This document shows, piece by piece, positions 1,828 to 21,614 of a stretch of 64,000 bases of DNA. The notes beneath the pieces are model-generated. The model was not told the origin of the DNA. It saw nothing but the letters and a program-made list of their open reading frames with translations, and did no database searches. The stretch lies in sequence record MK773491.1, one strand, 5' to 3'. Within the stretch, counting starts at the first letter, position 1; each line of letters opens with the position of its first letter. The translations under genes and the position numbers were made by a program.

Positions 1828-1847
1828 CCACCAGCTTAAGCTGGTGG
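1828..1847. other. Perfect 20-bp palindrome of two back-to-back Chi sites (CCACCAGC-TTAA-GCTGGTGG)
   Basis: Exact match to enterobacterial Chi GCTGGTGG on both strands. Confidence 0.9.
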
Positions 1848-2037
1848 ATGTGGTTAGAATAATAAGAAGGGGAAATCCCCAATCATACGATGAACTATAT
1901 TCAATTCTACCAGTACTGCGAATAGTTACTCCACAAGAATGAGAAGACTGTTGTAGTACTGAACTTTTTATGACGAGAAAATTTGAATAGATTTTGGGTG
2001 TACTTATCCTGTACTCTGGACGGATTAAGGGCGTGTT

Positions 2038-2140
2038 TGATTCTCATTCGCATATAAGAATGATAAACTTTCTCAACATGAGAATGGTTCTCAGTTGCAA
2101 ATAAGAATAGTTCTCAAATGAGAATAATAATGATTATCGT
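2038..2140. promoter_or_regulatory. Array of Fur-box-like hexamer repeats
   Basis: TGATTCTCATTCGCAT, ATGAGAATGGTTCTCA, ATAAGAATAGTTCTCAAATGAGAATAATAATGATTATCG resemble GATAATGATAATCATTATC. Confidence 0.55.
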
Positions 2141-2237
2141 TTTCAGTACTAGACTAATTTTTCCATTGGCTAGCCTACCGCGACGGAATATAATATTCCG
2201 GCAGTATCACGAATCAGCTTGTTTTAAATCTGCCGTT

Positions 2238-2266
2238 ATTATCTCAATATCTGGGTAGAATGTCAA
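2238..2266 (-). promoter_or_regulatory. Leftward sigma70 promoter TTGACA-17-GATAAT with no downstream ORF
   Basis: Near-consensus hexamers, 17-bp spacer. Confidence 0.65.
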
Positions 2267-2290
2267 GCTAATATTTTAAAAAATAAATGC

Positions 2291-2490
2291 TTGACACGTT
2301 GGCAGTACTTTGCTATTATATACACATAGCAAGAACAATGCTCAAGCCCACAGGGTGCGGAGGTGTATTCGTTAAAAGCTAAATGCGAATGATTATCATT
2401 TCGCTCATATGATACATTTCCGCACCCTCTAGGGTCTCCGCTTTCTCGCGTCTATGTAGTAATTATACGGTAATGCGGTTTATGCGTCAA
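2291..2490. ncRNA. Convergent promoter pair enclosing two inverted RCCC-N-GGGTGC motifs and a central Fur-like palindrome
   Basis: + TTGACA(2291)-17-TATTAT; - TTGACG(2490)-17-TATAAT; motifs 2346-2358 and 2422-2435; AATGATTATCATT 2388-2400. Confidence 0.55.
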
Positions 2491-2640
2491 GTACTTTTTT
2501 AAAGAAAATCGAAAATAATTTAGTACTATATGTATATAAGGAAGGAAAAAGAATTTTCAAAAAGTACTTGCATTCTAATTTCACCTATTGCATAATAGCT
2601 ACATCGAAACGAGATACACAAACACATTAAGGAAAACGAT

Positions 2641-2874
2641 ATGATTCGCATTGTTCGCATTAATTACTCTACCGGTGAAGCTGATAAAGTAGCGGTTATT
2701 GTATCAGAAAAGAATGATGATCATCTACACAATACGCTGATGCGTTTTGTTAGTGCGGTTGACCGTTGGGCTAGTATTGAGTACTTAGAAACGTTTAAAG
2801 TCCCTGCCGTCCAGCTTAACGGGCATGATATTAAAGCAATTTGGAATGCTGACGAAATGATCGCGAACATGTAA
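2641..2874 (+). CDS. Hypothetical early protein
   Basis: Own promoter, AAGGA RBS. Confidence 0.85.
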   Translation: MIRIVRINYSTGEADKVAVIVSEKNDDHLHNTLMRFVSAVDRWASIEYLETFKVPAVQLNGHDIKAIWNADEMIANM

Positions 2875-2965
2875 TTATTTCAAGTACTATCAAAATTTAC
2901 TTGACTTACTTTGATAGTACTTTATAATACTTACATACAAACGAAGTACTATTAAGGAAAGCATT

Positions 2966-3097
2966 ATGATCACTATCGAGAAAATCCGTTTAGCAGTAGA
3001 AGAACTGATCGCGGCTGGCTGGATTGTCGCAGAAAGTGAAGAAGAAATTAACATTGTAGTAAATGGTATGTATTCAGTTATGACAAACGTGGAGTAA
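2966..3097 (+). CDS. Small hypothetical protein (43 aa, MITIEKIRLAVEEL)
   Basis: Promoter cassette and AAGGAA RBS; below ORF-track cutoff. Confidence 0.75.
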   Translation: MITIEKIRLAVEELIAAGWIVAESEEEINIVVNGMYSVMTNVE

Positions 3098-3179
3098 GTT
3101 AGTATTAAAAGTACTTGCATTTACTTAGCGAGTACTTTATAATACTTACATACAAACGAAACACTATTAAGGAAATATC

Positions 3180-3797
3180 ATGGAAAACATCATCGACGTT
3201 ATCAAGTCTGTTTCTTATGCTGATCTGAATGAAGAACAAAAAGAAAAAGCTATTGAGATCATGCGAGAGTTAGAAAATCAAGAAATGACTCCGTTTTGGT
3301 CTGTAGATATTACTGATCAATGGAAAGAAACTTTAGACACTGAATACGGCATTACTGATGCAGTGATTTATTGGTCTGGTTTTTGTTCACAAGGTGACGG
3401 TGCATCGATTAGTACTGAATACTATATTGATATTGAGAAGTTTTTACGTAAATGTAAAGCGTGGTCAAAATTCCGTGTACTGCACAAAATTATTGACCGT
3501 GAAGAAATTCATGCTAAGATTGAACGTAGCTCAAGCCGTTACAATCATGAAAACACTGTAAGCGGTAGCGTAGAGCTTGATTATAACATTGATTGGACGG
3601 CGAAGCAGGAAAGCGAAGCTGAACGCTTAGAAGAATTTTTGACCGAAACTATTCGCGAACTTTCTTGTAAGCTGTATAAAGAACTTGATAATGAGAATGA
3701 TTATCAAAACAGCGATGATGCTCTTTGGTCTACCATTGAAGCAAATGAATATGATTTTGCTGTAAACTCAAACGGCGACGTTTTGCGTATCGCCTAA
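3180..3797 (+). CDS. Acidic phage protein with WSGFCSQGDGAS motif
   Basis: Promoter cassette, RBS; motif recalled from phage/plasmid hypothetical proteins. Confidence 0.85.
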   Translation: MENIIDVIKSVSYADLNEEQKEKAIEIMRELENQEMTPFWSVDITDQWKETLDTEYGITDAVIYWSGFCSQGDGASISTEYYIDIEKFLRKCKAWSKFRVLHKIIDREEIHAKIERSSSRYNHENTVSGSVELDYNIDWTAKQESEAERLEEFLTETIRELSCKLYKELDNENDYQNSDDALWSTIEANEYDFAVNSNGDVLRIA

Positions 3798-3902
3798 AGT
3801 ACTGACATACTGTAAAACGCTCTATAACGCATTGTAGGGCGTTTTAAGGAATAGCAGTATCATTTATCATCTTAATTAATTAAACGGCGTAGACGGCGAT
3901 TT

Positions 3903-4073
3903 ATGAGCAAACAAGATATATTGAAAGGGGATGTTTTATACTGGTTAGATCCTGATGATGGGATCTGTTCTGGATGGGTAACAGTATTAGACGTTAATAC
4001 TACAGTACTGGTAAAAGGTGCAACGGCAGAATTTGAAGTGCTACCCGAAGAACTTTATTCGCATGAAGTTTAA
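3903..4073 (+). CDS. Small hypothetical protein (56 aa)
   Basis: MSKQDILKGDVLYWLDPDDG...; ends at the next promoter cassette. Confidence 0.7.
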   Translation: MSKQDILKGDVLYWLDPDDGICSGWVTVLDVNTTVLVKGATAEFEVLPEELYSHEV

Positions 4074-4157
4074 AAAGTACTTGCAAAGTAAATCTAAAAG
4101 CGTATAATGATTTGCATAGGGGGAAACATCTTCCCCCCACTATTAAGAGAAACGATT

Positions 4158-4598
4158 ATGACTATCTACTATCTGACTTATAAAACCGCCGACAATGTAA
4201 CTGATGCTAATGTGACCGCAAACACGGTACAGGAAGCAATGGAAGTACTGAAAGCGGAACTACCTGATATTCAGATCGTTTGTGTAGTTGATACCGAAAC
4301 GAATCTTAAAACTATTATTGACCACTATGATTATTTCCGTGGGCGTAAGTTACAGGACTGGTATCATATCGAAATAGAAACACGTGAACTACCAGAAGAA
4401 CAACAGCACTTTGAGCAGGGTACTAGCATTTGGGTTACTACCGATAAACGCATATATTTCTGTTCACGCATACACGTTAACAAGCGTGTTAAAATTGGGG
4501 CAGATTCATATAGTGGACTGTTTACAAATAGTAACCTACTAAATGACAAGTACATAAAAGTTTATGAGCGTTTTGGAACTGATATTTACGCTTCATAA
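4158..4598 (+). CDS. Hypothetical early protein
   Basis: Start moved to ATG 4158 after the leader hairpin and RBS. Confidence 0.8.
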   Translation: MTIYYLTYKTADNVTDANVTANTVQEAMEVLKAELPDIQIVCVVDTETNLKTIIDHYDYFRGRKLQDWYHIEIETRELPEEQQHFEQGTSIWVTTDKRIYFCSRIHVNKRVKIGADSYSGLFTNSNLLNDKYIKVYERFGTDIYAS

Positions 4599-4602
4599 TA
4601 TC

Positions 4603-4729
4603 ACAAAGGGGAAGCAATTGCTTCCCTGTTTATTTGTACAGTACTATAATCTATAGATACAATACCGCACCCCGTGGGCTAATGTGTTTTCATGGGTATT
4701 ATTATGCCAGTACTACAAACATTTGTCAA
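4603..4729 (-). ncRNA. Candidate ~95-nt sRNA: TTGACA-17-CATAAT promoter, GCCCACGGGGTGC motif, intrinsic terminator
   Basis: Promoter 4729-4701, motif 4667-4679, bidirectional hairpin 4607-4627; near-duplicate at 13171-13297. Confidence 0.6.
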
Positions 4730-5127
4730 TCATTATTTTCAATTAATTTAAACGCACTGTAACACTGTATAAGGCGTTTTGTTATTAAGGTAAGCAAACG
4801 TATTGAGTACTATCTAAAAGGCCGTTGTGGGCTTGCTGGTGGCGTTGTGTTGTAGTATTGAAATATAAGGAAAATATAAAAAAGGCTGTCAATGATTAAA
4901 AAAGTACTTGACGGATTGATTTAGTACTGTCATAATGTATCACATAGAGCGGCGGGATGGATAAACATTCCTAAGTAGACAGCCAGTAAGTCATACGAAA
5001 GACTGGTGCCGAACTGAAAGAAAGATTGAAAAGAGTTTTAAAAAGTACTTGACAAGCTGGTGGGAAATTGAGATAATGACCCCGTAGACAGCAAACAACC
5101 TAATTAAACTTTAAGAGGAAATATACA

Positions 5128-5715
5128 ATGACTACTACTACTGAAAATGCACGTGTTACCCTGAAATCTGCACTGGAAGCTGGCGACGTTAAAACCCTTG
5201 CTGTTATCCTTGCGAAAGTTGGTCATGATAAAGACGGCGTATCTAAATTGGGCTTGACTTTCTCACTGGCGGTTAAGGAAGCGAAGGAAGTACTTAAAGA
5301 GCAAGCCAAAGCAGCAGAAGAAGCTGCACGTCAGGCAGCAGAACGCCGCGAAGCTAAAAAGGCTGCACGTCAAGCCGAAGAAGAAAAGCGTCAGGCTGAG
5401 ATCAAGGCAGAAAAAGAAAATATGCTCAAGTTCCTCATGGATACGGTTAACGGTATGGGCTTAGACCTTGAGGCGGCAGAAGCGGCAGCAGAAGCGGCAA
5501 TTGTTAAAAAGTACGGCGATGTTAACAAAGTACCTAAGTATACTTTTAACCGTGTAGCGGTGATTGTAGACGGTAAAGAATACAACATGCCAACTTCTGG
5601 GAACATGGTAGAAGTACTTAAAAATGCACTTGAAGCAAGCGGTAAATCGCGTAAAGAGTTTATCATCGAACACGCGAAAGACAAGGCAGAAGCGGAAGCG
5701 GCATTCGCTGAATAA
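5128..5715 (+). CDS. H-NS-like protein (coiled coil plus H-NS-like C-terminal domain)
   Basis: PKYTF...G..VEVLKNALEASGKSRKEFII resembles H-NS PAKYSY...[23 protein letters not shown]; Ala/Glu/Lys helical linker. Confidence 0.5.
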   Translation: MTTTTENARVTLKSALEAGDVKTLAVILAKVGHDKDGVSKLGLTFSLAVKEAKEVLKEQAKAAEEAARQAAERREAKKAARQAEEEKRQAEIKAEKENMLKFLMDTVNGMGLDLEAAEAAAEAAIVKKYGDVNKVPKYTFNRVAVIVDGKEYNMPTSGNMVEVLKNALEASGKSRKEFIIEHAKDKAEAEAAFAE

Positions 5716-5732
5716 TAACAGTACTAAACTAT

Positions 5733-5759
5733 AGGCGGCCTAAGTGGTCGCCTTTTTTT
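5733..5759 (+). terminator. Intrinsic terminator
   Basis: AGGCGGCC-TAAGT-GGTCGCC-T7. Confidence 0.85.
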
Positions 5760-5773
5760 AATTGGGGGATTAT

Positions 5774-6034
5774 ATGGCTGTAGGATTCGCGAAAGACGGG
5801 GCAGAACAAGACGAGATTTTAGCGGTCATAAACGCCGCTGTAAGCCACGCAAGGAATCAGATAGGGGATAGTACTATTACAAGTAGAACGCACTGCCTAG
5901 ACTGTTCTAGGACTATTCCTGAGCGTAGACGGGAAGTAGTAAAGGGTGTTAAGTACTGCGTAGAGTGTCAGGCTGATCATGATAGTATATTTAAAAGAGA
6001 TCCGCGTAATTGTTGGCACAGATCTATGAGATAG
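5774..6034 (+). CDS. TraR/DksA C4-type zinc finger protein (YbiI-like)
   Basis: MAVGFAKDGAEQDEI...CLDC..IPERRR...GVKYCVECQ; GGGGGA RBS before 5774. Confidence 0.9.
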   Translation: MAVGFAKDGAEQDEILAVINAAVSHARNQIGDSTITSRTHCLDCSRTIPERRREVVKGVKYCVECQADHDSIFKRDPRNCWHRSMR

Positions 6035-6115
6035 TACTTGACATACTTTCTGATTAAAGTATAATGATTTGCATAGAGGGAAACATCTTCCTTCACTAAT
6101 TAAGGAAATAGAATC

Positions 6116-6388
6116 ATGCGTACACCAATGACCCGCGAAGAAATACACACAGTACTGACAACTAACATTCAGGACTGGAAGAAATACGCAGATATTAACG
6201 AAGCTCAAGACTTGAACAATGAGCTAGATGGTGAAGATCTGGACGTAATTTGTTCCCCTGAGTTTTATGATGATATTCATTCCGATGATGATGTTTGGAA
6301 TGTACTGGAAAAGCATTTCCTCGATACTGATTTAAGTATCTACTCGCGTGATACTTTTATTTTAATTCACAACATTTATAACAAATAA
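6116..6388 (+). CDS. Hypothetical early protein
   Basis: Promoter/hairpin cassette, RBS. Confidence 0.85.
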   Translation: MRTPMTREEIHTVLTTNIQDWKKYADINEAQDLNNELDGEDLDVICSPEFYDDIHSDDDVWNVLEKHFLDTDLSIYSRDTFILIHNIYNK

Positions 6389-6467
6389 TTGTTGACTTAC
6401 TTATATAGTACTGTATAATGGTTTGCATAGGGGGAAACATCTTCCCCCATCAATTAAGGAAAAGAAA

Positions 6468-6677
6468 ATGACTCGATACACTGTAGAAGTACGTACTACT
6501 AAAAACATTGCTACTGATGTGATTCGTTATTATAAGATGGTTTGTGGTGTTGCTCGCCGTATTAGTAAAGCGGATTATGACAAGCTGGATCGCGAAGCTG
6601 ATGGTATGGATTGTTTTTATACAGTAAACACAAAAACGCATACAAAGCAATTTAAAACATTGTCTTATTACATGTAA
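6468..6677 (+). CDS. Hypothetical early protein
   Basis: Start moved to ATG 6468 after AAGGA RBS. Confidence 0.85.
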   Translation: MTRYTVEVRTTKNIATDVIRYYKMVCGVARRISKADYDKLDREADGMDCFYTVNTKTHTKQFKTLSYYM

Positions 6678-6760
6678 AAAGTTTTACTCCAGTACTTGAC
6701 AATAGATGCGAGTACTGGCATAATAACTTTATTGAAACGAAATACTATTAAGGAAATATC

Positions 6761-7150
6761 ATGGCTAATCTCATTGTTCGATTGTATGAAGATTGTTTCT
6801 ACTTTGAGTATTGTGGGAAACCTATATCCGTTAAAGAGATGATCGCATCGGGCTATATGTTATCTAAGCATGATCACACTGGATTCATGGCTGAAATGAT
6901 TGCGGCTAGTTATAAGTTTGGTGAAGAATGGGAAGCACAATATTTTCCGGCTGTCAATGCAATGATTAAGCGGTTGGCAGAACACACTGAGTTTATGGAA
7001 TTTTGGACTGTTTTAAAAATGGTTGACGTGAATCAGAATGGGGAAACGTGTCAGCCATACGCACATTTTGACGCTGGGGAAGATATTAGCACAATTTGGA
7101 AATGGTTGGAAGATAAATTTACAACAATTAAAATTGCAGATTACTTGTAA
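6761..7150 (+). CDS. Hypothetical early protein
   Basis: Promoter, RBS. Confidence 0.85.
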   Translation: MANLIVRLYEDCFYFEYCGKPISVKEMIASGYMLSKHDHTGFMAEMIAASYKFGEEWEAQYFPAVNAMIKRLAEHTEFMEFWTVLKMVDVNQNGETCQPYAHFDAGEDISTIWKWLEDKFTTIKIADYL

Positions 7151-7234
7151 AAGTACTTGCATTACTATCTGAAAAGCGTATAATGGTTTGCATAGGGGGA
7201 AACATCTTCCCCCACTAATTAAGAGAAGAATATC

Positions 7235-7615
7235 ATGGCTAATCAAATCACTCCAGCACAGACCTTCAATAAATTCAGTACTGAAATCGTATTGAAAGAG
7301 TATGTGCCAGATTATGGTTGGACTGATGCATGTGTATGCACTGATGTAGCAGATGCAAAGCAACGCATTAAAGATTATCGTGCGGAGGGTTTACAGGTTA
7401 AAACTGCCCGTCGCCGTGTACTTAACAAAGATGCTTTCTTATGTCAAGCTCTTTTAAACTTCTGCCGTGACTACTATCGCCGTACTGGTGGATTATGGCC
7501 TAATGAGGTTGAAGTACTGAAATCTAACGGTAAAGTAAAATTTACCTTGACTTTAAAAGAAATTGAGGAAGTACTTGGTGATGATTGTTTTTTAGTAACT
7601 TCACAGCCAGCATAA
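7235..7615 (+). CDS. Hypothetical early protein
   Basis: Promoter/hairpin cassette, RBS. Confidence 0.85.
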   Translation: MANQITPAQTFNKFSTEIVLKEYVPDYGWTDACVCTDVADAKQRIKDYRAEGLQVKTARRRVLNKDAFLCQALLNFCRDYYRRTGGLWPNEVEVLKSNGKVKFTLTLKEIEEVLGDDCFLVTSQPA

Positions 7616-7684
7616 AAAAGTACTTGACACATAACGGGGATATGATACAATATCCCCATATTGAAAAGTAATGGAAGTACTGAA

Positions 7685-7876
7685 ATGAATTATCAAAAGG
7701 TTAGCAAGCGAGTAGTTGAACTCTCTAAGAAAGCACGTAAAGAGTATACCTTAGAACGTTCAATTAACAACTATCATTTAAAGCAAGGTGATAAGTTTAT
7801 TGTTATTGACGAACCTTTGGAAATCGTGTATATTGTAGTTAATGCGATGATTCGTGATAAAACGAGGATTAAGTAA
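7685..7876 (+). CDS. Hypothetical early protein
   Basis: Promoter TTGACA 7624; ATG start. Confidence 0.7.
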   Translation: MNYQKVSKRVVELSKKARKEYTLERSINNYHLKQGDKFIVIDEPLEIVYIVVNAMIRDKTRIK

Positions 7877-8131
7877 ATGCGTACATTAGACCAACTTATT
7901 GACCCTAATACGTCAGCACGTCGATCAATGGTTACTATCGGCGGTAATGGTAAACAACACTGGAGTGGTTACATTTGCTTTATTGTTGGTGGAAAAATGT
8001 ATGAGCGGGTAGTATATCACAAAGAGATTAATTATATACTATTCCGTAAAGAAGTCATAGCAGTCGATCCTACCGCCCTAAAACCGATTGCAGGGGCATG
8101 GAACAAAGAATCGCTGTACCTTACAGCTTAA
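7877..8131 (+). CDS. Hypothetical protein
   Basis: GAGGA RBS; abuts the upstream stop. Confidence 0.8.
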   Translation: MRTLDQLIDPNTSARRSMVTIGGNGKQHWSGYICFIVGGKMYERVVYHKEINYILFRKEVIAVDPTALKPIAGAWNKESLYLTA

Positions 8132-8180
8132 CCAATAAAAGGCCGCTACGTGCGGCCTATCGCGTTCTAGAGGGTATATT

Positions 8181-8363
8181 ATGAATACTGTACAAGTACT
8201 AGATGAGATTGAAAAAATTGTTGACAGTACTAACAAACGTGATATACTGTTATCAAGAAATGAGGCTAACCAGTACGAAAAGAATTGCGTACAATCGGTA
8301 AAAGGGGGCATCTTTGAATCGTTACACACAGCCATACTTCAAGGGAATCACAACTGTTCCTGA
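8181..8363 (+). CDS. Hypothetical protein
   Basis: GAGGG RBS. Confidence 0.65.
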   Translation: MNTVQVLDEIEKIVDSTNKRDILLSRNEANQYEKNCVQSVKGGIFESLHTAILQGNHNCS

Positions 8364-8567
8364 GCGTAAAAAGAAACTACGCACAGCACCGAAACGAAAG
8401 CGTAAAGTACTTAAACTTAAACCAACGTATGGTTGGGGATTGTCGTGGGATGAAATCAATCACGGCCTATCATGGAATCAATTATATGTTATTGGCTCAA
8501 GTGTTGGTCGCTTTCATTTTAGTACTATATCACGACACGAAACACGTGTAAACCCATATAAAAGTAC

Positions 8568-8752
8568 TTGACATGCATCCGGCTTAGTGAGATAATACTT
8601 ACAAGCCGGAGAAATGGCGTGACCCAGCGGGTGCGAAGAAGTAATAAGTACTTGAGAATGATAATCATTTACGATACTAGACAGATTTATGCACCCGATG
8701 GGTTAGATTGTTTTCATGTGTATATAATATCAAAGTACTATTATAGTGTCAA
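8568..8752. ncRNA. Second convergent promoter pair with inverted ACCC-N3-GGGTGC motifs and a central Fur-like box
   Basis: + TTGACA(8568)-17-GATAAT; - TTGACA(8752)-17-TATTAT; motifs 8622-8634 and 8691-8704; TGAGAATGATAATCATTT 8653-8670. Confidence 0.6.
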
Positions 8753-8844
8753 GCATTTTTATTTGATAATTATTTTAAAAAAGTCTTGCATTACTTTCTG
8801 AATAACGTATAATACTTACATCAACCACTAAGAGGAAAGAAACA

Positions 8845-9216: not shown

Positions 9217-9304
9217 AAAGTACTTGCAAAGTAATCTGATTGGCGTATAATGTTTTACATAGAGAGGGGGAAATAGTTTCCCCTCCAAATTAAGGAAAAG
9301 TATC

Positions 9305-10964: not shown

Positions 10965-10967
10965 AGA

Positions 10968-13167: not shown

Positions 13168-13170
13168 TAA

Positions 13171-13923: not shown

Positions 13924-13980
13924 CAGTACTAAGGGAGTGTTATATAATACTCCCATGTTAAGCAAACGAGGAATTACAAA

Positions 13981-14351: not shown

Positions 14352-14428
14352 TTATTATCAAAAGTACTTTACAAGTATAGTAGAGTACTTTATAATACTT
14401 ACATCAATTAAGCAAAGAGAGAAACATC

Positions 14429-14665: not shown

Positions 14666-14744
14666 TTATTATCAAAAGTACTCTTGACAATACAAAGAGA
14701 GTACTTTATAATACTTACATCAACTAAGCAAAGAGGATAGGAAA

Positions 14745-14882
14745 ATGAAAGAATCTCAATACGAAGCAGTACTGGCACAGACTGGTGAAGATCTGACTAC
14801 TGAGCAGTACGCTAAAATTGAAGAGATGCTTTTAGCTGGTAAATCTGTTAAAGACACTGTGAAAGCAGTTCGTAAGATGTAA
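14745..14882 (+). CDS. Small hypothetical protein (45 aa)
   Basis: Cassette promoter, GAGGATAGGA RBS. Confidence 0.8.
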   Translation: MKESQYEAVLAQTGEDLTTEQYAKIEEMLLAGKSVKDTVKAVRKM

Positions 14883-14956
14883 AATAATTAGTCAGTACTC
14901 TTGACACTATCATAGAGTACTGCTATAATTACTTTACTTAATCAGGAGAACATACT

Positions 14957-15274
14957 ATGGCTTTACATTCAGCAATGCGAAAAACTGTTAACATCTATGC
15001 AGATAAAAACATTATGGATTGTACTCTTGGGCATACTGATAATCAATATGCAATTATGGTAAAAAACCCGTTCACTGGTGAAGATTGCATTTACAGTGGA
15101 CAGTACTTAGAAAGTAATTTATTACCTGCCACAAAACGCAGTGAAATGAAAGGGTATATTACCCGGCACAGAGCAGAACGTGACATTGCAACAATCTTTT
15201 TACCCGGTCAAAATGCTCGTGTGGTAACGATGGAAGAAGCAGAGATTTTTCTTGGCAGCCGCTTTAAAGTGTAG
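14957..15274 (+). CDS. Hypothetical early protein
   Basis: Promoter, AGGAG RBS. Confidence 0.85.
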   Translation: MALHSAMRKTVNIYADKNIMDCTLGHTDNQYAIMVKNPFTGEDCIYSGQYLESNLLPATKRSEMKGYITRHRAERDIATIFLPGQNARVVTMEEAEIFLGSRFKV

Positions 15275-15485
15275 TATAATACTTTTATCAAATCAAGTGG
15301 AGTACTAAAAAGATGATTACACCTATTGCACCAATCTACAAAACAGTGTATAATACTTATAGTACTCCAAGGCAACAACAGATTATAGAGGAACTGAAAG
15401 AACAGAAAAAAGAAGTAAAAAGTACTGGTAACCGAATCGATATTAAAGTATAATACTTACATCAACCACAAAGAGGAATACAAAA

Positions 15486-15824
15486 ATGGCTATTACTTCT
15501 ATCTTCTGCAACACCCGAAACGAAGCACGTCAGGCTAAAATCGATTTCAACGGTAAAATTGTTGACAATGGTTCTGATGCACCCAAGGGACAGCGTTGGG
15601 AAGTACAATACGAAGTAGCCCCCGTATCTGATGCCATCGCGGAACTTGCAGCAATCATGCAAGCGGAAGTACAAGACATGGCACTAGAAGAAGTGTCACC
15701 ACGTGAGATTATGGGTCTTCCACGTCCTGTAAGCAAGCATAAAAAAACCCGTGCTGTGATCATGAAAGATCGCAAAGGTAATCCAGTTACTGTACAGGTT
15801 CGCCGTCGCCGCATTACTGCCTAA
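15486..15824 (+). CDS. Hypothetical protein with Arg-rich C-terminus
   Basis: GAGGA RBS; downstream GCAA hairpin. Confidence 0.85.
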   Translation: MAITSIFCNTRNEARQAKIDFNGKIVDNGSDAPKGQRWEVQYEVAPVSDAIAELAAIMQAEVQDMALEEVSPREIMGLPRPVSKHKKTRAVIMKDRKGNPVTVQVRRRRITA

Positions 15825-15864
15825 CCGAAAGGGGGAGCAATCCCCCAAACTTTTAAGAGGATTT

Positions 15865-16116
15865 ATGAAGAAGCAAGTACAATTAATTAATGGTAATTTC
15901 ATGCGATTGCATTATAAACCACAAAAGAAAATCATTGAGAAAGCTACAAAGGTAGCAAATGATTTTGTTAGTGGGACAGTTCGCCCTCGTAAACTATCTA
16001 ACGGATTGTTTCAAGTACTGGATATTAGCAGAACAGAACGTATCGTAATTGATAAGGAAAAGCAAATACATTTAATGAGTCACGAAAAGTACAATGATTT
16101 TGTGAATCAGCGTTGA
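15865..16116 (+). CDS. RelE/ParE-like small protein (C-terminal LMSHEKYN)
   Basis: RPRKL...L.I...RI...LMSHEKYN pattern recalled from phage ParE-like toxin family. Confidence 0.45.
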   Translation: MKKQVQLINGNFMRLHYKPQKKIIEKATKVANDFVSGTVRPRKLSNGLFQVLDISRTERIVIDKEKQIHLMSHEKYNDFVNQR

Positions 16117-16170
16117 CAGACTACCACCAACATAGTATAATACTTTCATCAACTAAACGAGGGTTCTAAA

Positions 16171-16560
16171 ATGAAAAAGATTGTTTCTGCTATCGCCATC
16201 GCTGTTATGTTTTCTTCAACTCCAGTTATGGCATACACTGTTAATCTGAATGAATTGACAGATTGGGGAAACCAAATGCGTGATCGCTTTGCAGTACCAG
16301 ACCATATCCAGCAGCAGCAAAAACAAGGTAGTGAAATGTTATGCCGTGGGGTAATGACCAACGAGCAAACCGGACAACAATTCCGCGAACAATTCCGTAC
16401 TAGTGGTGAACGTTCGGTATCGGGTAATGATATCATCTATCATGATGAAGATGAAACCGGAAGTACTACCTTGCAAATTAATGCAAAAACTGGTAAAGGC
16501 TTTATTACGATGATGGACACTGAAAAAGTTATCGTAACTGGTAATGTAGTTTGCAAATAA
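16171..16560 (+). CDS. Exported protein with signal peptide
   Basis: MKKIVSAIAIAVMFSSTPVMA; two Cys. Confidence 0.8.
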   Translation: MKKIVSAIAIAVMFSSTPVMAYTVNLNELTDWGNQMRDRFAVPDHIQQQQKQGSEMLCRGVMTNEQTGQQFREQFRTSGERSVSGNDIIYHDEDETGSTTLQINAKTGKGFITMMDTEKVIVTGNVVCK

Positions 16561-16569
16561 AGTACTAAA

Positions 16570-16660
16570 AAAGGGGTTGACTTCGGTTGGCCCTTTTGCT
16601 ATTATATATCCCATAGAAACAAGCTAACCCACAGGGTGCATAAATATATCTATAATTTAC
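16570..16660 (+). promoter_or_regulatory. Terminator/promoter fusion plus TAACCCACAGGGTGC motif in a leader
   Basis: TTGACT 16577, TATTAT 16600, motif 16625-16639. Confidence 0.6.
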
Positions 16661-16676
16661 CGAAAGGAGAGACATT

Positions 16677-17210
16677 ATGCCCGGACATTTCCGTTCTAAA
16701 TCAGGTGCTATTATCGCTGGTCACAGTGACAAGTGGAGTGATGAAAACCGTAGACGTAACAGTTTCAACGCTGGACAGGGTTCACGTGGTTCTCGTAACC
16801 AAGGCACTGGAGCAGCAGGACAAGCACAAACTAAAACAGATACCATTGTAGATACTTCTCGGATGAAACCAGAAGAAAAACTAAAGTACTTCCAATCTTT
16901 GGGATTACTTGGTCATCAAGAGAAAGGTTCTAAAGAGCCACCAAAAGCAGCACCACAAAAACCAATGCCTACTGATAGTAAATCACTTATTAGTACTTTA
17001 CAAGATCAATGGAAAGATGCATTTAAAGGCGATGTACGCCATTCTAAGCGACTTATTGCAGAACTTAAGGACGTTGCCCCAGCTAAGATCAAAAAAGCTC
17101 TACAGGCTGCTTACAGGGCCACACAAGAGGTTACCGCACGTGAAGCCGACCCCCTAGCAATAGTTGAATATATCAGTGATGCTATTGTTCCATTTACATA
17201 TGAAGATTAA
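16677..17210 (+). CDS. Basic protein with disordered N-terminus
   Basis: AGGAGA RBS; G/R/S/Q-rich N-terminal half. Confidence 0.8.
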   Translation: MPGHFRSKSGAIIAGHSDKWSDENRRRNSFNAGQGSRGSRNQGTGAAGQAQTKTDTIVDTSRMKPEEKLKYFQSLGLLGHQEKGSKEPPKAAPQKPMPTDSKSLISTLQDQWKDAFKGDVRHSKRLIAELKDVAPAKIKKALQAAYRATQEVTAREADPLAIVEYISDAIVPFTYED

Positions 17211-17276
17211 AATAAAAGGTTGACATGAGTCAGCCTTTTTTGCTATCATAGAACTACACAAATAGGAGATAGTAAC

Positions 17277-17540
17277 ATGAAATACTTACTAATCATCGCC
17301 ACATTATTCAGTACTCAAGCAATGGCAACAGATATGGTTTGTAGTGCTGATGGTTTCCAAACTGTATTCAAGGTAGATGGCAACACGCTTATTGACACCA
17401 ACGAACACGTAGTAGCTGAAGAAATCAGTACTGGTAAGTTTATGGCACAAGATCAGTTCGGTGAAGTAGTTTATACTATTCACGGAAATAAGATTGTAAT
17501 GCAATTCAGTGGTGTTATCAAAGAGTACAATTGCAAATGA
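17277..17540 (+). CDS. Exported protein with signal peptide
   Basis: MKYLLIIATLFSTQAMA; Cys near each terminus of the mature chain. Confidence 0.8.
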   Translation: MKYLLIIATLFSTQAMATDMVCSADGFQTVFKVDGNTLIDTNEHVVAEEISTGKFMAQDQFGEVVYTIHGNKIVMQFSGVIKEYNCK

Positions 17541-17731
17541 TTGTACAAGTAACACTAAAAGGATTGAAGCCCGGAGAAGATGACTACGAAACACATGTAG
17601 CCACTATTTCCGGGTTGACAATGGATGAAATTGATGGTAATATACTGTCATACATCTACGAATGGCGTAATGCAAACGGGTATTACAAAATGAAATATAT
17701 TCATAAAGAGGTAATCTCATGCGATAACTAA
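17537..17731 (+). CDS. Hypothetical protein
   Basis: ATGA overlap. Confidence 0.7.
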   Translation: MIVQVTLKGLKPGEDDYETHVATISGLTMDEIDGNILSYIYEWRNANGYYKMKYIHKEVISCDN

Positions 17732-17747
17732 CACAGGAGATTACACA

Positions 17748-17963
17748 ATGCCAACTCATTCACTAGTACTTAATGGGATTCGATTCAAAATGACTGAGGG
17801 TGCATTGCAAAGTACTAACACGCAATTAGTACTTGATAAACTCACAAAAGAACAATGTGATGGTATCCTTCGCGAAGCAAATCGCATTAAGTCAACTGTA
17901 TCAAATCACCCGGTTAAGCGTCAATTACTTCAGGGGATCATTATGGGATGTTTGCGTAAATGA
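17748..17963 (+). CDS. Hypothetical protein
   Basis: AGGAG RBS. Confidence 0.8.
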   Translation: MPTHSLVLNGIRFKMTEGALQSTNTQLVLDKLTKEQCDGILREANRIKSTVSNHPVKRQLLQGIIMGCLRK

Positions 17964-18112
17964 TTTATCAACAAATTATTGCAGTACTGAAAACACTTGA
18001 CTACGGAAATGCAATCCGTTATGCTAGTGCTAACGCCTTTGAACTCGCTCAAATGTATGAGCAAGGTAGTACCATTGATGAGCTGGTGGAGGTTTGTCTC
18101 AGTCATAAATAA
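17960..18112 (+). CDS. Small hypothetical protein (50 aa, MIYQQIIAVLKTLDY)
   Basis: ATGA coupling; fills the gap. Confidence 0.7.
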   Translation: MIYQQIIAVLKTLDYGNAIRYASANAFELAQMYEQGSTIDELVEVCLSHK

Positions 18113-18138
18113 TCTTGTAATTATTACAGGAGATCATT

Positions 18139-18411
18139 ATGACAGACTTAAACGCAATCAAGCAATGGAGTACTATCCCATTAAAAGAACTACCGCAACT
18201 ACTAAAGCAACAAGGTTTTCAATTTGTGCCACGTTTTAGTACTGAAGATCATCGCATCTTCGTATCCCAAGATGGACAATATTTGATTAATATTATCCGT
18301 AATACTGGAAAAGTATACAGTACTAAAAATCAGAAATCACCTTTGCATATTTTTGGTATTCGTAATGGTGAGATTCCAAAAGGTGCAGATAAAGCATTCA
18401 GAACTGAATAA
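18139..18411 (+). CDS. Hypothetical protein
   Basis: AGGAG RBS. Confidence 0.8.
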   Translation: MTDLNAIKQWSTIPLKELPQLLKQQGFQFVPRFSTEDHRIFVSQDGQYLINIIRNTGKVYSTKNQKSPLHIFGIRNGEIPKGADKAFRTE

Positions 18412-18479
18412 TAAAAAAGGGTTGACTTAGGTCGGCCCTTTTTGTTATTATATACTTATTGAAGCGAAGGAGATAGAAC

Positions 18480-19070
18480 ATGTACGTCACTAAAGCAGCA
18501 AAGAAACACTTAAAAGAACTTGACAAGTTACCAACTAATAAACAAATGTTAAAGTACTGTCGAGAAAATTTAACACGTTTGGGTAAGGGTTCAAGTCGTG
18601 AAGTTTTTGCATTATCTGATACATTAGTAATCAAGATCGCTTTAGGTGGTGTAGGTGTAAAACAGAATGAAAATGAGATTCGTATCTGGAATCTAGTTAG
18701 TTATTCATTTACTGGATTTAAGAGATCATTCGCTAAAGTACTGGTAAATTTATGCCACTGGAAAGACTTCTATATCGTCATGGAGCGTTTAAATACACAA
18801 ACTGTATCTCGGTCAATCTTTAATACAAGTACCGTTAGAGCGTGGCGTATGAATCGCAACGCAATGCATCCAATTGCTAAACGTATATTCAAAGATGTAC
18901 AAGCCACTGATGATAATGCTTATACTAATAACATAGCAGATATAACTCCACGAAATATGGGAACATCAAAAACAGGCGTTGTCAAGATGTTGGATTATGG
19001 TTTTAGTACTCCTATATGGAATGGACTTGCTAATGGTACATTAAAGAATAGAGAATTACTTATAAAATAG
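18480..19070 (+). CDS. Protein kinase-fold enzyme (Ser/Thr kinase-like)
   Basis: LGKGSSREVF Gly loop, VIKIA Lys, NENE, IVMERL hinge, DITPRN catalytic loop, LDYG (DFG-like). Confidence 0.8.
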   Translation: MYVTKAAKKHLKELDKLPTNKQMLKYCRENLTRLGKGSSREVFALSDTLVIKIALGGVGVKQNENEIRIWNLVSYSFTGFKRSFAKVLVNLCHWKDFYIVMERLNTQTVSRSIFNTSTVRAWRMNRNAMHPIAKRIFKDVQATDDNAYTNNIADITPRNMGTSKTGVVKMLDYGFSTPIWNGLANGTLKNRELLIK

Positions 19071-19132
19071 TTCTTGACTCCGTTACGCTGGTGGGATATA
19101 CTTATCCCATCAACAACAGAGAGGAATATAAA

Positions 19133-19378
19133 ATGTTTAAAGTACGTAAATGGTCTGACTCTAACGCCCGCCCTTATGATGTTGTTTATGTGGATGATAT
19201 TCGAAACAATATCCACTATCAACCCGGAGTGGAGTTTAGTACTATTGAAGGTGCTTATCATCATAAAGAAGTACTAATCAAAAGCACTGATGAAGATAGT
19301 ATAGAATTTATCCGTAAACATTGGCCCACTGATGGTGCTGCTGATGAGGATAATTCAGAAGAACCAAAAAAAGATTAA
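19133..19378 (+). CDS. Hypothetical early protein
   Basis: Start moved to ATG 19133 after GAGGA. Confidence 0.8.
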   Translation: MFKVRKWSDSNARPYDVVYVDDIRNNIHYQPGVEFSTIEGAYHHKEVLIKSTDEDSIEFIRKHWPTDGAADEDNSEEPKKD

Positions 19379-19384
19379 TATAAA

Positions 19385-19485
19385 GAGGTTGACTTCGGTC
19401 AGCCTTTTTTGTATTATATACACCAAGAAAACAGCTAACCCACAGGGTGCATAAATCCGTCTTTCAAATGTATATTTTTTCATCG
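19385..19485 (+). ncRNA. Terminator/promoter fusion plus TAACCCACAGGGTGC motif, no ORF
   Basis: TTGACT 19389, TATTAT 19412, motif 19436-19450. Confidence 0.5.
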
Positions 19486-19610
19486 AAGTACTAAAACGAA
19501 TACGAAACAAATAAATTTCAAAAAGTACTTGACCACTATTACAGATTGTCGTATAATGTTTTACATCGAGAGGGGAAATGGTTCTACTCTCTAACTTAAG
19601 GAATTAAATC

Positions 19611-20132
19611 ATGATTACTACTCCAGTACGCGATATGTTTAACGTTAACCCACACACTGGTATTGCTTATGGATACATCAACGCGAACAACGTAAACAGT
19701 GAAGTACTGAATGAAATTTTCTGCAATGGCATTGATGTAGCTCGACTTGAAGCAGATATTGACTTCGCCAAACGTTATGATTTCGTAGTACCTGATCAAA
19801 AGGAATCAGAAGATTATACTGCTTATCTTGAGCGTGTACAATCCGATATGCTTGACTTCCTTAACAATCTGGGCGATGATGTGATGGAAAAAGTGGAAGC
19901 ACATGATCGCGAATATGAAGAGTTTACAGGTCATGTACATGCCGCCACTGTAGATAAGACTACAGTACTTTATAACACTGATAACAATACTATCTGTGTT
20001 ATGGATGGCATCAATGTTGGTTTCTTCTATGCTTGCTCTCCATGCTGCCCGAATGCTGGTGATCTTGATAGTGCTGGTGGAAGTGTAGAAACTTACGATG
20101 TACCTGCAAGCTGGCGTGAACTGGATTACTAA
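19611..20132 (+). CDS. Conserved phage protein (NPHTGIAYGYI; CSPCCPNAGDLD)
   Basis: Hairpin cassette, RBS. Confidence 0.85.
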   Translation: MITTPVRDMFNVNPHTGIAYGYINANNVNSEVLNEIFCNGIDVARLEADIDFAKRYDFVVPDQKESEDYTAYLERVQSDMLDFLNNLGDDVMEKVEAHDREYEEFTGHVHAATVDKTTVLYNTDNNTICVMDGINVGFFYACSPCCPNAGDLDSAGGSVETYDVPASWRELDY

Positions 20133-20191
20133 TTGACAACAACAAAGGGATAGCATACACTATCCCTAACTTAAGAAAAGAGGAAATCAAA

Positions 20192-20371
20192 ATGGTTCAC
20201 GTTGATCTTGAAGTACTGAAAAAAGTATGGTACGACATTGGCTATAAAAATATTAGCTGGACGGATAACCAGTACATCGAGCTTAAGGCACTGGATAACT
20301 GGCAGCGTAATGAAGTACTGAAAGCACACAAAAAAGGTGTAGATGATCGCTTTAACTTTCCTGTACTTTAA
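20192..20371 (+). CDS. Small hypothetical protein (59 aa)
   Basis: Promoter, GAGGA RBS. Confidence 0.8.
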   Translation: MVHVDLEVLKKVWYDIGYKNISWTDNQYIELKALDNWQRNEVLKAHKKGVDDRFNFPVL

Positions 20372-20463
20372 TAGAAAAAAGTACTTGCATAGTATTCTGA
20401 TTACTGTATAATGTTTTTCATAGAGAGGGGAATGGTTCTTCTCTCTAAATTAAGGAAAACATT

Positions 20464-20646
20464 ATGACTAACAAATATCGTACTCAGTTCTTCATGGTTG
20501 ATGGTGCTCGATTAACTGCTGCTGACGTACACGAGTACTACGGAGTGAGCATTGATGATCTTCTGGTGATGCATGAAGATGAAACACAATTCTTCCATGC
20601 TCATGGGTACGAGGTTAAAGTAACACGCTGCCCAGCATACAATTAA
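20464..20646 (+). CDS. Small hypothetical protein
   Basis: Hairpin cassette, RBS. Confidence 0.8.
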   Translation: MTNKYRTQFFMVDGARLTAADVHEYYGVSIDDLLVMHEDETQFFHAHGYEVKVTRCPAYN

Positions 20647-20691
20647 TCATTTGGGGAGAGAGGTAATACTCTCCCATATTAAGGAACGTCC

Positions 20692-20958
20692 ATGAAACTG
20701 ATTAACACACTAACGCGATTGTTTGGCACTGATAATGTTGACGATTGGAACGATGTTAACGATGAAGATAATGTGATTGATTACATCGTTATCTACCACA
20801 ACAATGATGGTGATAATGAGTGTGAGCCTGATTACTTCCTACGCCACTACGACAACGGATCATACCAGCTTAATGATCTCAGTGGCAACGTAATTCACAC
20901 TGGTAATGATCTGGCAGTACTAAAGAAAGTACTAAAGAATTTACCAAAAAGTAATTGA
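20692..20958 (+). CDS. Acidic hypothetical protein
   Basis: AAGGA RBS. Confidence 0.8.
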   Translation: MKLINTLTRLFGTDNVDDWNDVNDEDNVIDYIVIYHNNDGDNECEPDYFLRHYDNGSYQLNDLSGNVIHTGNDLAVLKKVLKNLPKSN

Positions 20959-21050
20959 CTATAATCTGCTGGTGGAGTATTATATATCCATTGGCAGATA
21001 AGCCACTAACCCACGGGGTGCATAGATCCATCTATTGGATTTAAGTACTA
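20955..21050 (+). ncRNA. Promoter (Chi in spacer) plus TAACCCACGGGGTGC motif, no ORF
   Basis: TTGACT 20955, TATTAT 20978, motif 21007-21021; leader nearly identical to 11010-11043. Confidence 0.5.
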
Positions 21051-21165
21051 AAACCTTTTAAAAAAAGAATAAAGAAAGTACTTGCATTACTATCTCAGTA
21101 CTGTATAATGTTTTACATCGAGAGGGGGAAATGGTTCTCCCTCCTAATCCAAAAGGATACGCACT

Positions 21166-21567
21166 ATGTTCACATTAAACCATTTCTCCGATGTTGTTGC
21201 TGTTGCTAAAACCTTCGGCGTTGATGCACTTCGATACGCGATGGATAACAGCACCGTATCCGTTGGTGCATGTCACACTATCCGTGACTGCATGAAGTGG
21301 GCTGCTAACAAAGTTGTTAGTATTGATAACTTCAACGATGGTAACAATGAGTATAGCATTGATGCTGTATTCTCTACCGAGAACGTAGCTGGTCTGTACA
21401 TCACTGGCCTCGATGATATTCGTATCTCTCGTACTGGTTTCGGTTCCTTCTACGGCGATGCACGTGAAGCAATGGAGAAGGGTATTATCAATGCCGAGCA
21501 GTTAGGCAAAGTACTAAAAGAGATTGCATTACGCAATGAAGCAGCTAAAGCCTTTGGTTTGCTGTAA
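21166..21567 (+). CDS. Hypothetical early protein
   Basis: Hairpin cassette, RBS. Confidence 0.85.
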   Translation: MFTLNHFSDVVAVAKTFGVDALRYAMDNSTVSVGACHTIRDCMKWAANKVVSIDNFNDGNNEYSIDAVFSTENVAGLYITGLDDIRISRTGFGSFYGDAREAMEKGIINAEQLGKVLKEIALRNEAAKAFGLL

Positions 21568-21585
21568 TACATAACACACTATACA

Positions 21586-21614
21586 AGGCCACTGGTTAAC
21601 GCTGGTGGCCTTTT
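21586..21614 (+). terminator. Intrinsic terminator whose 3' arm contains a Chi site (21601-21608)
   Basis: AAGGCCACTGG-TTAACG-CTGGTGGCC-TTTT. Confidence 0.75.

Follow-up and report, generated by a model that had tools for sequence, protein, structure and literature searches.

The Chi octamer, GCTGGTGG, is itself under selection in a 20.6-kb segment of the Salmonella phage 7t3 that probably represents the direct terminal repeat (DTR) of this phage. Fourteen Chi sites of one polarity are packed into this segment, and we lean, with modest confidence, towards the view that Chi tames the host RecBCD enzyme there and has the two DTR copies recombine by way of RecA.

The Chi cluster and the inferred terminal repeat of phage 7t3

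The window, i.e., the whole stretch of 64,000 nt analysed here (MK773491.1), belongs with 100% identity to 7t3, a jumbo phage of the Rak2/121Q type with a genome of 348,718 bp (~349 kb). The phage fENko-Kae01 is 97% identical to 7t3 and has a PhageTerm-mapped DTR of 19,736 bp, both border 20-mers of which match the window exactly, at 1345 and 21983; the first base of the Munch record also corresponds to window position 1345. These matches suggest that the DTR borders of 7t3 lie at 1345 and 21983. For fEgEco12 and Sharanji, PhageTerm analysis or restriction digestion has established DTRs of ~20 kb. The repeat is present as a single copy in the deposited 7t3 record, and the virion DNA would carry two copies in the order DTR - unique region - DTR. 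The DTR accounts for 5.9% of the genome, is 70% coding and contains ~48 small genes, all on the + strand, with sigma-70-type promoters, many of which reached 10-12/12 consensus on this strand in a consensus scan, as well as 29 repeated intergenic blocks of ~50-220 bp each. Among its ten largest proteins, the comparison with PHROG gave a family of known function for only one (virion structural), while the hits of six more were all to families of unknown function. In the leader at the left end, the 7t3 record has ORFs of only 30-45 aa, and no gene of comparable size is annotated in Munch or fENko-Kae01 (the latter has a single 46-aa ORF). A previous reading made from the sequence only had labelled the segment an early region, which overlooks that the domain is probably a ~20.6-kb DTR; this assignment would explain both why the Chi domain has sharp borders and how its sites are oriented towards a DNA end.

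The exact search recovered every Chi site listed in that reading, namely those on the + strand at 1840, 4835, 5056, 9410, 11095, 13282, 13426, 14173, 14631, 18082, 19087, 20073, 20968 and 21601, a further + site at 45496 and a − site at 44775, together with a − site at 1828 that was missing from its list. The whole window holds 15 + and 2 − exact sites, the latter at 1828 and 44775. The features are as follows.

1345-21983, +: inferred DTR of 7t3, 20,639 bp, delimited by the exact end 20-mers of the fENko-Kae01 DTR
1345-2640, no strand: left-end leader of the DTR without a credible gene (annotation comparison), holding the inverted Chi pair
1828-1835 (−) and 1840-1847 (+): inverted Chi pair with a TTAA loop, 483 bp from the left terminus
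4835-4842, +: intergenic Chi; Munch has GCTAGTGG at the equivalent position
5049-5077, +: promoter-like site called by the scan (TTGACA, 17-nt spacer, GATAAT), Chi 5056-5063 in the spacer
9410-9417, +: Chi in gene 9305-9541, codon phase 1 (Ala-Gly-Gly)
11083-11110, +: weak-consensus promoter (TTGCTT, 16-nt spacer, TATAAT), Chi 11095-11102 ending 2 nt before the -10
13269-13297, −: promoter-like site, 12/12 consensus, + strand Chi 13282-13289 in the spacer
13426-13433, +: Chi in gene 13384-13923, phase 1 (Ala-Gly-Gly-Tyr)
14173-14180, +: Chi in gene 13981-14205, phase 1 (Ala-Gly-Gly-Tyr)
14631-14638, +: Chi in gene 14429-14665, phase 2 (Gly-Trp-Trp)
18082-18089, +: Chi in gene 17960-18112, phase 3 (Leu-Val)
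19074-19102, +: promoter-like site (TTGACT, 17-nt spacer, TATACT), Chi 19087-19094 ending 2 nt before the -10
20073-20080, +: Chi in gene 19611-20132, phase 1 (Ala-Gly-Gly)
20955-20983, +: promoter-like site (TTGACT, 17-nt spacer, TATTAT), Chi 20968-20975 ending 2 nt before the -10
21585-21612, +: terminator-like hairpin 3' of gene 21166-21567, Chi 21601-21608 forming its 3' arm, followed by UUUUAC
44775-45503: background Chi pair, 44775 (−) and 45496 (+), outside the DTR and not part of the feature

The arms at 1828 and 1840 make up a perfect palindrome, CCACCAGC-TTAA-GCTGGTGG, whose hairpin folded at about -16 to -17 kcal/mol on either strand, and this inverted pair is kept at 588-607 in vB_Ec-M-J and at 30331-30350 in EC22.5-2. 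The last Chi, already noticed as part of a terminator stem, lies in a structure of -19.9 kcal/mol (folded window 21580-21630) whose 5' arm pairs via G-U wobbles, so that no − strand Chi arises. Hallingskeid (389 bp into its record) and vB_Ec-M-J (at 11739) carry this hairpin too.

Selection on the octamer and its recurrence in relatives

The enrichment over chance that had been claimed for the cluster was borne out by all background models. The composition of the region predicts 0.11-0.25 Chi on its + strand (Markov orders 0-2) versus the 14 observed, and dinucleotide shuffles of the window gave 0.49 Chi with both strands summed, none of 100 exceeding 2. Chi came first among the 168 octamers of the same composition in the DTR, where the runner-up was found twice, and it ranks 17 among all octamers of the DTR. 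The 24 one-mismatch variants were not enriched (7 on + and 3 on −), and no flanking motif was common to the DTR sites. The genome-wide count by orientation points the same way: 7t3 carries 24 + and 7 − sites, with 14 + and 1 − inside the DTR (binomial P = 7e-12 for 14 of 24 + strand sites in 5.9% of the genome; P = 0.001 for the strand ratio of 14:1), and the 10 + and 6 − sites outside are near the Markov order 4-5 expectation. The density in the DTR is about 727 sites per Mbp, with a mean spacing of 1.5 kb. The cluster spans 1828-21608, within the inferred DTR, and + strand Chi is absent from the 7t3 genome for 23.5 kb rightward and 29 kb leftward of it; the Chi-rich domain thus appears to coincide with the DTR.

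The placement of the sites and the choice of codons also show that the word itself is selected. Eight of the 14 sites are non-coding although 70% of the DTR is coding (P = 0.03), and the coding sites use all three reading phases. All four Ala-Gly-Gly tripeptides of the DTR are written GCT-GGT-GGN, i.e., as Chi, where 0.19 were expected (P = 0.0013), and the sole suitable Leu-Val context of the DTR is written as Chi versus none of 19 outside it.

Related phages were compared by the number of co-oriented/opposite Chi sites in the DTR or early block. This number was 12/2 in fENko-Kae01, 11/2 in Munch, 11/2 in Hallingskeid, 9/2 in vB_Ec-M-J (none across the following 28.5 kb) and 7/2 in CBB (versus 2/1 across the following 27.5 kb); in EC22.5-2, for which the whole genome was counted, it was 9/2 inside and 7/10 in the other 331 kb. 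Four lineages, whose DTR DNA is largely unalignable between them, therefore share one-polarity Chi clusters that occupy the DTR or early block. A point against the model below is the Alcyoneusvirus K64-1, where the 50 kb surrounding the DksA-like gene hold a single Chi, although this stretch may not be its DTR.

Polarity of the sites, RecBCD and alternative explanations

The host is probably able to use this Chi, as had been presumed: the octamer works in crosses of Salmonella enterica and in every enteric tested, Klebsiella among them (10.1101/2021.07.08.451572). An interaction with RecBCD remains the best reading of the cluster. Top-strand Chi activates RecBCD that comes in from the right end and moves right to left (PMC12315714), and the polarity of the 7t3 sites fits RecBCD entry at the inferred right terminus. 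Rak2-type phages form no nucleus-like compartment, so that their DNA would be exposed, and RecBCD probably engages the 7t3 ends. An enzyme loading at the right genome end would meet 14 active Chi within the right DTR copy, the first being 21601-21608, which ends 375 bp from the inferred right terminus; one loading at the left end would meet a single active Chi, the − arm at 1828, 483 bp in. Chi would turn RecBCD from DNA degradation to RecA loading on a 3' tail of DTR sequence, and the RecA-coated tail could invade the other DTR copy, of the same or a sister molecule, to yield circular or concatemeric DNA or to prime a round of recombination-dependent replication. A Chi beyond the DTR would give a tail without a homologous partner, so the sites would pay off only within the repeat, and they would have to be dense enough there for RecBCD to escape only rarely into unique DNA; recombination between the DTR copies would in this way account for the sharp borders of the cluster. 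That the outcome is such recombination, and not protection alone, is more speculative than RecBCD engagement. The proteins of 7t3 include RecA/UvsX-like, SbcD/Mre11-like and SbcC/Rad50-like proteins and a Dda-like helicase, and this end-processing and recombination equipment of its own counts against the DTR-recombination model. In lambdoid phages, own recombination genes and a RecBCD inhibitor go with the absence of Chi, and the early DTR proteins of no known function might be RecBCD inhibitors. The asymmetry of 14 versus 1 between the ends is a further point against the model, which explains it only if one of the ends enters late or is shielded.

A broader proposal is that the DTR of Rak2-like jumbo phages is a landing pad where host RecBCD is required and not just evaded, which we offer tentatively and regard as doubtful. 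RecBCD would enter one defined end and be converted at one of 9-14 Chi, and RecA-dependent invasion would circularise the genome or prime the first replication before the UvsX-type system of the phage is made. If so, the 14:1 asymmetry records which DNA end is exposed in the cell. Recombination driven by Chi through RecBCD and RecA is known for P1 and some lambdoid phages, and we found no report of it for jumbo phages in the literature.

The polarity and border evidence would be the same if the sites served protection only, Chi attenuating the RecBCD nuclease at the end exposed first or longest, so that the early genes of the repeat survive until phage functions take over, with inter-repeat recombination unnecessary. 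The strong host-type promoters and small early genes of the DTR would suit this role, as would the annotation of the T5 terminal repeat as the first DNA into the cell. We nevertheless consider protection alone unlikely, because a single intact DTR copy would suffice to express the genes, recognition of Chi in vivo goes together with the loading of RecA, simple protection of DNA by Chi is disputed, and the two Chi of the T5 repeat are active just at the right end, which is not the first to enter. Mimicry of host self, as put forward in the sequence-only reading, is as such a matter of dispute in work on RecBCD.

Because every DTR gene runs in the direction of Chi, sequence alone cannot separate the polarity from the direction of transcription or replication. 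The earlier view that polarity belongs to the DNA molecule is supported, but the argument for it from 13282 is weak: only 7t3 has this site (Munch and fENko-Kae01 read TCGGGTGA there), and no − strand gene lies downstream of the − promoter-like site 13297-13269. Polarity might also be linked to replication as on the E. coli chromosome, if rightward-moving forks originate close to the left border of the DTR, and leading-strand Chi aids the repair of broken forks by RecBCD heading back to the origin. The signs of transcription and GC skew switch at about window 1300-2000, and − strand genes left of the DTR bear − Chi (56496, 56556 and 56733 of the 7t3 record; four such sites in Hallingskeid), an origin-like, divergent pattern. 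But + strand Chi stops at the right DTR border whereas + genes and positive GC skew run on for >100 kb, and the sites left of the DTR lie on the coding strand of glycine-rich repeat genes and may be coding by-products, so we judge this explanation improbable.

Very little probability is also left for a role without RecBCD, as an element of promoter spacers or as the binding site of a protein from phage or host, for instance a factor for packaging, transcription or the nucleoid. Five Chi had been placed in promoter spacers, of which 5056, 13282, 19087 and 20968 were confirmed by the scan; the promoter of 11095 has a weak -35 and was missed by the consensus scan, yet it has the upstream A-tract motif of its family, and Munch carries ACTGGTGG in place of this Chi. 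Three of these 4-5 sites end exactly 2 nt before the -10, and a similar arrangement is present at 21020 in CBB. On the other hand, the word is exactly the Chi of the host, without extension or enrichment of near variants, the majority of the sites are outside promoters, the position in the spacer varies (1, 6, 7 or 7 nt from the -35) and one Chi is on the strand opposite its promoter. Chi as a promoter element was rejected, since the octamer occurs in just 4-5 of dozens of promoter-like sites. Finally, we give almost no credence to the earlier idea that Chi-driven RecBCD-RecA recombination between repeated promoter cassettes reshuffles early genes: the DTR does hold 29 repeated intergenic blocks, but 28 are free of Chi and the exception touches the 7t3-specific 13282, crossing over of direct repeats would delete genes, and the two DTR copies offer far more homology with their 20 kb. 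What stands of the earlier interpretation is octamer selection, polarity as a property of the DNA molecule and the link to RecBCD; cassette recombination, self mimicry and the 13282 argument are weak, disputed or unsupported.

Comparison with known systems

The E. coli chromosome likewise shows a strong strand bias of this octamer, co-oriented with most genes, but its leading-strand bias extends along each whole replication arm, whereas that of 7t3 covers 6% of the genome and ends at the repeat borders. T5-type and SPO1-type long repeats carry pre-early or host-takeover genes, and 7t3 resembles them in its probable multi-kb exact DTR with small early genes and strong host-type promoters. The T5 repeat has two top-strand Chi at 1.5-2.1 kb from the right end, with the adjoining 56 kb free of Chi; with two Chi per repeat and eight genome-wide, T5 has no statistically strong cluster, unlike 7t3, and the Rak2-like group is not known to share its two-step DNA transfer.

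Zheng et al. (Genome Res 2025, PMC12315714) read the Chi clustered at the right end of LLS-type lambdoid phages as recruiting host recombination. The right end of 7t3 similarly has many co-oriented top-strand Chi, oriented to act on RecBCD entering there. The LLS phages differ in that their ends are cohesive, they lack a terminal repeat and they encode no recombination genes; because 7t3 encodes RecA/UvsX-like and SbcCD-like proteins, the rule of many Chi without a Rec module does not fit it, and its own Rec-type proteins set it apart from a class defined by having neither a phage recombination module nor a RecBCD inhibitor.

A parallel in proposed function is P1, where recombination of the terminal repeats and circularisation of the injected DNA depend on RecBCD and RecA (10.1101/2021.07.08.451572; PMC12315714). 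In P1, P7 and D6, Chi is concentrated in and around the ends that are terminally redundant (Subramaniam and Smith, bioRxiv 10.1101/2021.07.08.451572; PMC12315714). P1 is temperate, with headful packaging and variable ends, and has Chi on both strands (31 of 50 on top), whereas 7t3 is a virulent jumbo phage with a repeat that would be fixed and exact and a 14:1 ratio in its DTR. In both phages the Chi density is far over background in DNA that is, or in 7t3 would be, repeated at both virion ends (about 727 per Mbp in the 7t3 DTR and about 527 in P1, versus 217 in E. coli), and the role proposed for Chi in 7t3 is, as in P1, the recombination of terminal repeats.

Chi sites and the terminal repeat of phage 7t3

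The window is 100% identical to positions 62001-126000 of the record of Salmonella phage 7t3, a jumbo myovirus of the Rak2/121Q type with a genome of 348,718 bp. The first and last 20 bases of the direct terminal repeat (DTR) of Klebsiella phage fENko-Kae01 (97.5% identical; annotated DTR of 19,736 bp, determined with PhageTerm) have exact matches at window positions 1345 and 21983, window 1345 is also where the Munch record starts, and terminal repeats of about 20-22 kb are found in the relatives fEgEco12 (PhageTerm and restriction digests), Sharanji (PhageTerm), vB_Ec-M-J (annotated feature) and CBB (read depth). Therefore, window 1345-21983 (20,639 bp) was taken by homology as the putative DTR of 7t3, which is collapsed to a single copy in the deposited record. 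The GC content was 0.36-0.41 in the DTR versus 0.31-0.37 in the next 42 kb of the window, and the DTR was also richer in GC in vB_Ec-M-J (0.386 vs 0.323), CBB and Hallingskeid. An HNH endonuclease gene lies inside the DTR of fENko-Kae01 (locus 23481-23735) and Munch (locus 15453-15950), and 7t3 has no HNH gene at the corresponding place (window ~16560-16677).

The sequence-only reading had described fourteen co-oriented Chi sites, and the octamer GCTGGTGG was indeed found at every one of these + strand positions, and also at 45496. The − strand sites of the window are at 44775 and 1828, and the Chi arms at 1828 and 1840 form a perfect palindrome with the loop TTAA. Dinucleotide shuffles of the window gave a chance level of 0.49 Chi sites, and Markov models of orders 0-2 built on the Chi-rich region itself predicted 0.11-0.25 + strand sites there. 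Chi ranked 17th among all octamers of the region and was the sole GC-rich word near the top, the others being words that contain AGTACT or belong to promoters or ribosome-binding sites. Of the 168 octamers of Chi composition, the next most frequent has two occurrences in the region. These shuffles, Markov models and same-composition octamers ruled out chance or composition as the source of the cluster. One-mismatch variants showed no enrichment, which ruled out decayed Chi sites.

In the whole genome of 7t3 there are 24 + and 7 − strand Chi sites. Of these, 14 + and 1 − sites fall in the DTR, which makes up 5.9% of the genome (binomial P = 7e-12; strand ratio, P = 0.001), and the 10 + and 6 − sites in the 328 kb outside are near the prediction of Markov orders 4-5. 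The cluster spans from 483 bp inside the left DTR border to 375 bp inside the right border, and the nearest + strand sites past the borders are 23.5 kb rightward and 29 kb leftward. A − strand array of paralogous RCC1-like/glycine-rich genes adjoins the DTR on the left and carries Chi on its own coding strand (7t3 record 56496, 56556 and 56733; Hallingskeid locus 26786-33308), and the Chi pattern around the left border is divergent. This divergence may be a coding by-product or reflect replication polarity, and a by-product of coding is plausible for the − strand sites in these glycine-rich genes.

Selection on the octamer and its sequence context

Selection acts on the Chi DNA word itself. 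Eight of the 14 sites are non-coding while the DTR is 70% coding (P = 0.03), and the six coding sites represent all three codon phases. Each of the four Ala-Gly-Gly tripeptides encoded by DTR genes has the spelling GCT-GGT-GGN, as compared to 19% predicted from codon usage (P = 0.0013). For Leu-Val, the DTR has a single suitable context, which is spelled CTG-GTG, as against none of the 19 contexts of this kind in the rest of the genome. This synonymous-coding test, together with the majority of non-coding sites and the use of three phases, ruled out a codon or peptide by-product for the DTR sites. At three of the four in-frame sites (9410, 13426 and 14173), each in a different small early protein, the encoded peptide is Ala-Gly-Gly-Tyr with Glu or Lys as the next residue.

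The non-coding sites are placed where any sequence is tolerated. They were found in the spacers of four consensus-type promoters and one weaker promoter, in the DTR leader, which has no credible gene, and as the 3' arm of a terminator-like hairpin, which contains no − strand Chi because its arms pair through G-U wobbles. In the + strand promoters at 11083-11110, 19074-19102 and 20955-20983, exactly 2 nt separate the end of Chi from the -10 hexamer, and CBB shows a similar layout at locus ~20995-21040 (-35, 6-nt gap, Chi, 2 nt, AT-rich hexamer). This spacing, common to 7t3 and the distant CBB, could come from promoter-cassette ancestry or from a preferred neutral slot. The palindrome at 1826-1849 is unlikely to be a classical terminator, given that it was flagged on the − strand only, has a poor T tract and lies where transcription diverges. 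The window has 254 copies of the palindromic hexamer AGTACT versus 18.6 ± 4 expected (~6.7 per kb in the DTR, ~2.7 per kb outside), an enrichment far greater than that of Chi; it belongs to an early-promoter upstream motif (A-tract, then GTAC, then TTGACA) and is present in many other contexts and in relatives.

The intergenic DNA of the DTR also contains 29 repeated blocks of ~50-220 bp each (~3 kb in total, window 2882-21148), which carry promoter and ribosome-binding-site cassettes reused before many small genes. Chi lies outside 28 of these 29 blocks and no flanking bases are common to the 14 sites, which ruled out Chi as a piece of a longer repeat or motif.

Conservation of the Chi pattern in relatives

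Close relatives of 7t3 retain most of the Chi sites and the losses are one-base changes; 7t3 alone has gained a site at 13282. The pattern is seen again in lineages with DTRs that for the most part cannot be aligned to that of 7t3.

Table. Co-oriented/opposite Chi sites in the DTR or early block, then outside over the stated stretch. The DTRs of EC22.5-2, Munch and Hallingskeid were assigned by homology or gene layout.
Phage; group; host; DTR; inside; outside
7t3; unclassified; Salmonella; 20.6 kb, by homology; 14/1; 10/6 in 328 kb
fENko-Kae01; close relative of 7t3; Klebsiella; 19.7 kb, PhageTerm; 12/2; DTR count only
Munch; close relative of 7t3; Salmonella; 21.3 kb, by homology; 11/2; 1/1 in next 23.7 kb
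vB_Ec-M-J; Asteriusvirus; E. coli; 21.5 kb, annotated; 9/2; 0/0 in next 28.5 kb
EC22.5-2; Asteriusvirus-like (DTR matches vB_Ec-M-J); E. coli; 21.3 kb, by homology; 9/2; 7/10 in 331 kb
CBB; Mimasvirus; Pectobacterium; 22.5 kb, read depth; 7/2; 2/1 in next 27.5 kb
Hallingskeid; unclassified; Erwinia; ~22.6-kb early block; 11/2; 0/5 in next 22.4 kb

The 7t3 group and both E. coli phages retain the inverted Chi pair ~0.5 kb from the left border; CBB and Hallingskeid lack it at this position. The Chi-containing terminal hairpin is seen again in Hallingskeid, 389 bp into its record. An IMG/VR scan for the inverted pair returned 46 contigs, nearly all unrelated high-GC DNA, and the sole relevant match was phage 121Q. 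The loop of the pair is TTGT in 121Q (locus 4531-4550) and ACAA in vB_Ec-M-J (locus 588-607) and the downstream sequence is identical, thus the 4-nt loop is flipped between these two close relatives. K64-1 (Alcyoneusvirus), whose DTR is unmapped, has one Chi in the 50 kb around its DksA-like gene, a gene which is widespread and no marker of the DTR.

A candidate role for Chi in DTR recombination

It is an established rule that a top-strand GCTGGTGG activates RecBCD entering from the right end (PMC12315714). If the virion DNA is ordered as DTR, unique region and DTR, as homology suggests, the right DTR copy would therefore offer 14 active Chi sites to RecBCD from the right terminus; the left terminus would have one active site. 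Chi is recognized in roughly 20-40% of RecBCD encounters, and on this figure less than ~5% of RecBCD would escape all 14 sites. We propose that RecBCD would enter the right terminus and respond to Chi inside the right DTR copy, which would leave a RecA-coated 3' tail made of DTR sequence. The partner of this tail would be the 20-kb homologous DTR at the opposite end of the same genome, and their pairing could circularize the genome, yield a concatemer or prime a replication fork. The RecBCD action, the entry order of the DNA and the recombination outcome are all inferred. As proposed, this recombination would explain why the Chi cluster ends at the repeat borders, why the outermost sites are <0.5 kb from each terminus, and why Chi is so dense in the DTR (~727 per Mbp versus 217 in E. 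coli and ~527 in P1). The 14:1 asymmetry lies outside the reach of the model; the most we can offer is that one end may be shielded or late-entering.

The main counter-evidence to DTR recombination by host enzymes is that 7t3 encodes its own RecA/UvsX-like recombinase and an SbcCD-like nuclease; in lambdoid phages, such recombination genes together with a RecBCD inhibitor go with the absence of Chi. A PHROGs scan of the ten largest DTR proteins found no known RecBCD inhibitor or end protector (six matched unknown-function families only, one virion structural protein families, and three were unmatched). Chi could also protect an exposed end without any recombination. Replication-linked polarity, like that of the E. 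coli chromosome, is a further rival, and so is an octamer function unrelated to RecBCD. The earlier idea that Chi drives recombination between the promoter cassettes fares poorly, with all but one of the repeated blocks free of Chi.

Terminally clustered Chi sites are already known from P1 and LLS-type lambdoid phages. Full-text searches of a collection of papers found no link between Chi or RecBCD and Rak2-like jumbo phages, and the papers describing DTRs of Rak2-like phages do not mention Chi. What sets this case apart is that the repeat is fixed and exact, that the jumbo phage is virulent and encodes recombination genes itself, and that Chi polarity is nearly one-sided, with a two-way Chi hairpin adjoining the other terminus. 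Phage T5 (AY543070) offers a weak parallel to 7t3. Four of its eight Chi sites are two top-strand sites per 10.2-kb terminal repeat (8127, 8689; 119658, 120220), located 1.5-2.1 kb from the right end in the right copy, and its first 66 kb has no Chi besides the repeat pair. The right end of T5 is annotated as not first to enter and 'not essential until DNA replication begins'. If DTR recombination is true, RecBCD, commonly regarded as an obstacle for linear foreign DNA, would be a host factor for a family of virulent jumbo phages, which are under consideration for therapy against Salmonella, Klebsiella and E. coli. The very long terminal repeats of this family would gain their first mechanistic role, and one-sided Chi polarity would be a sequence readout of the genome end exposed after injection. 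The idea of Chi-assisted recombination-dependent growth, so far applied to temperate P1 and to lambdoid phages, would then also take in large lytic phages with their own recombinases.
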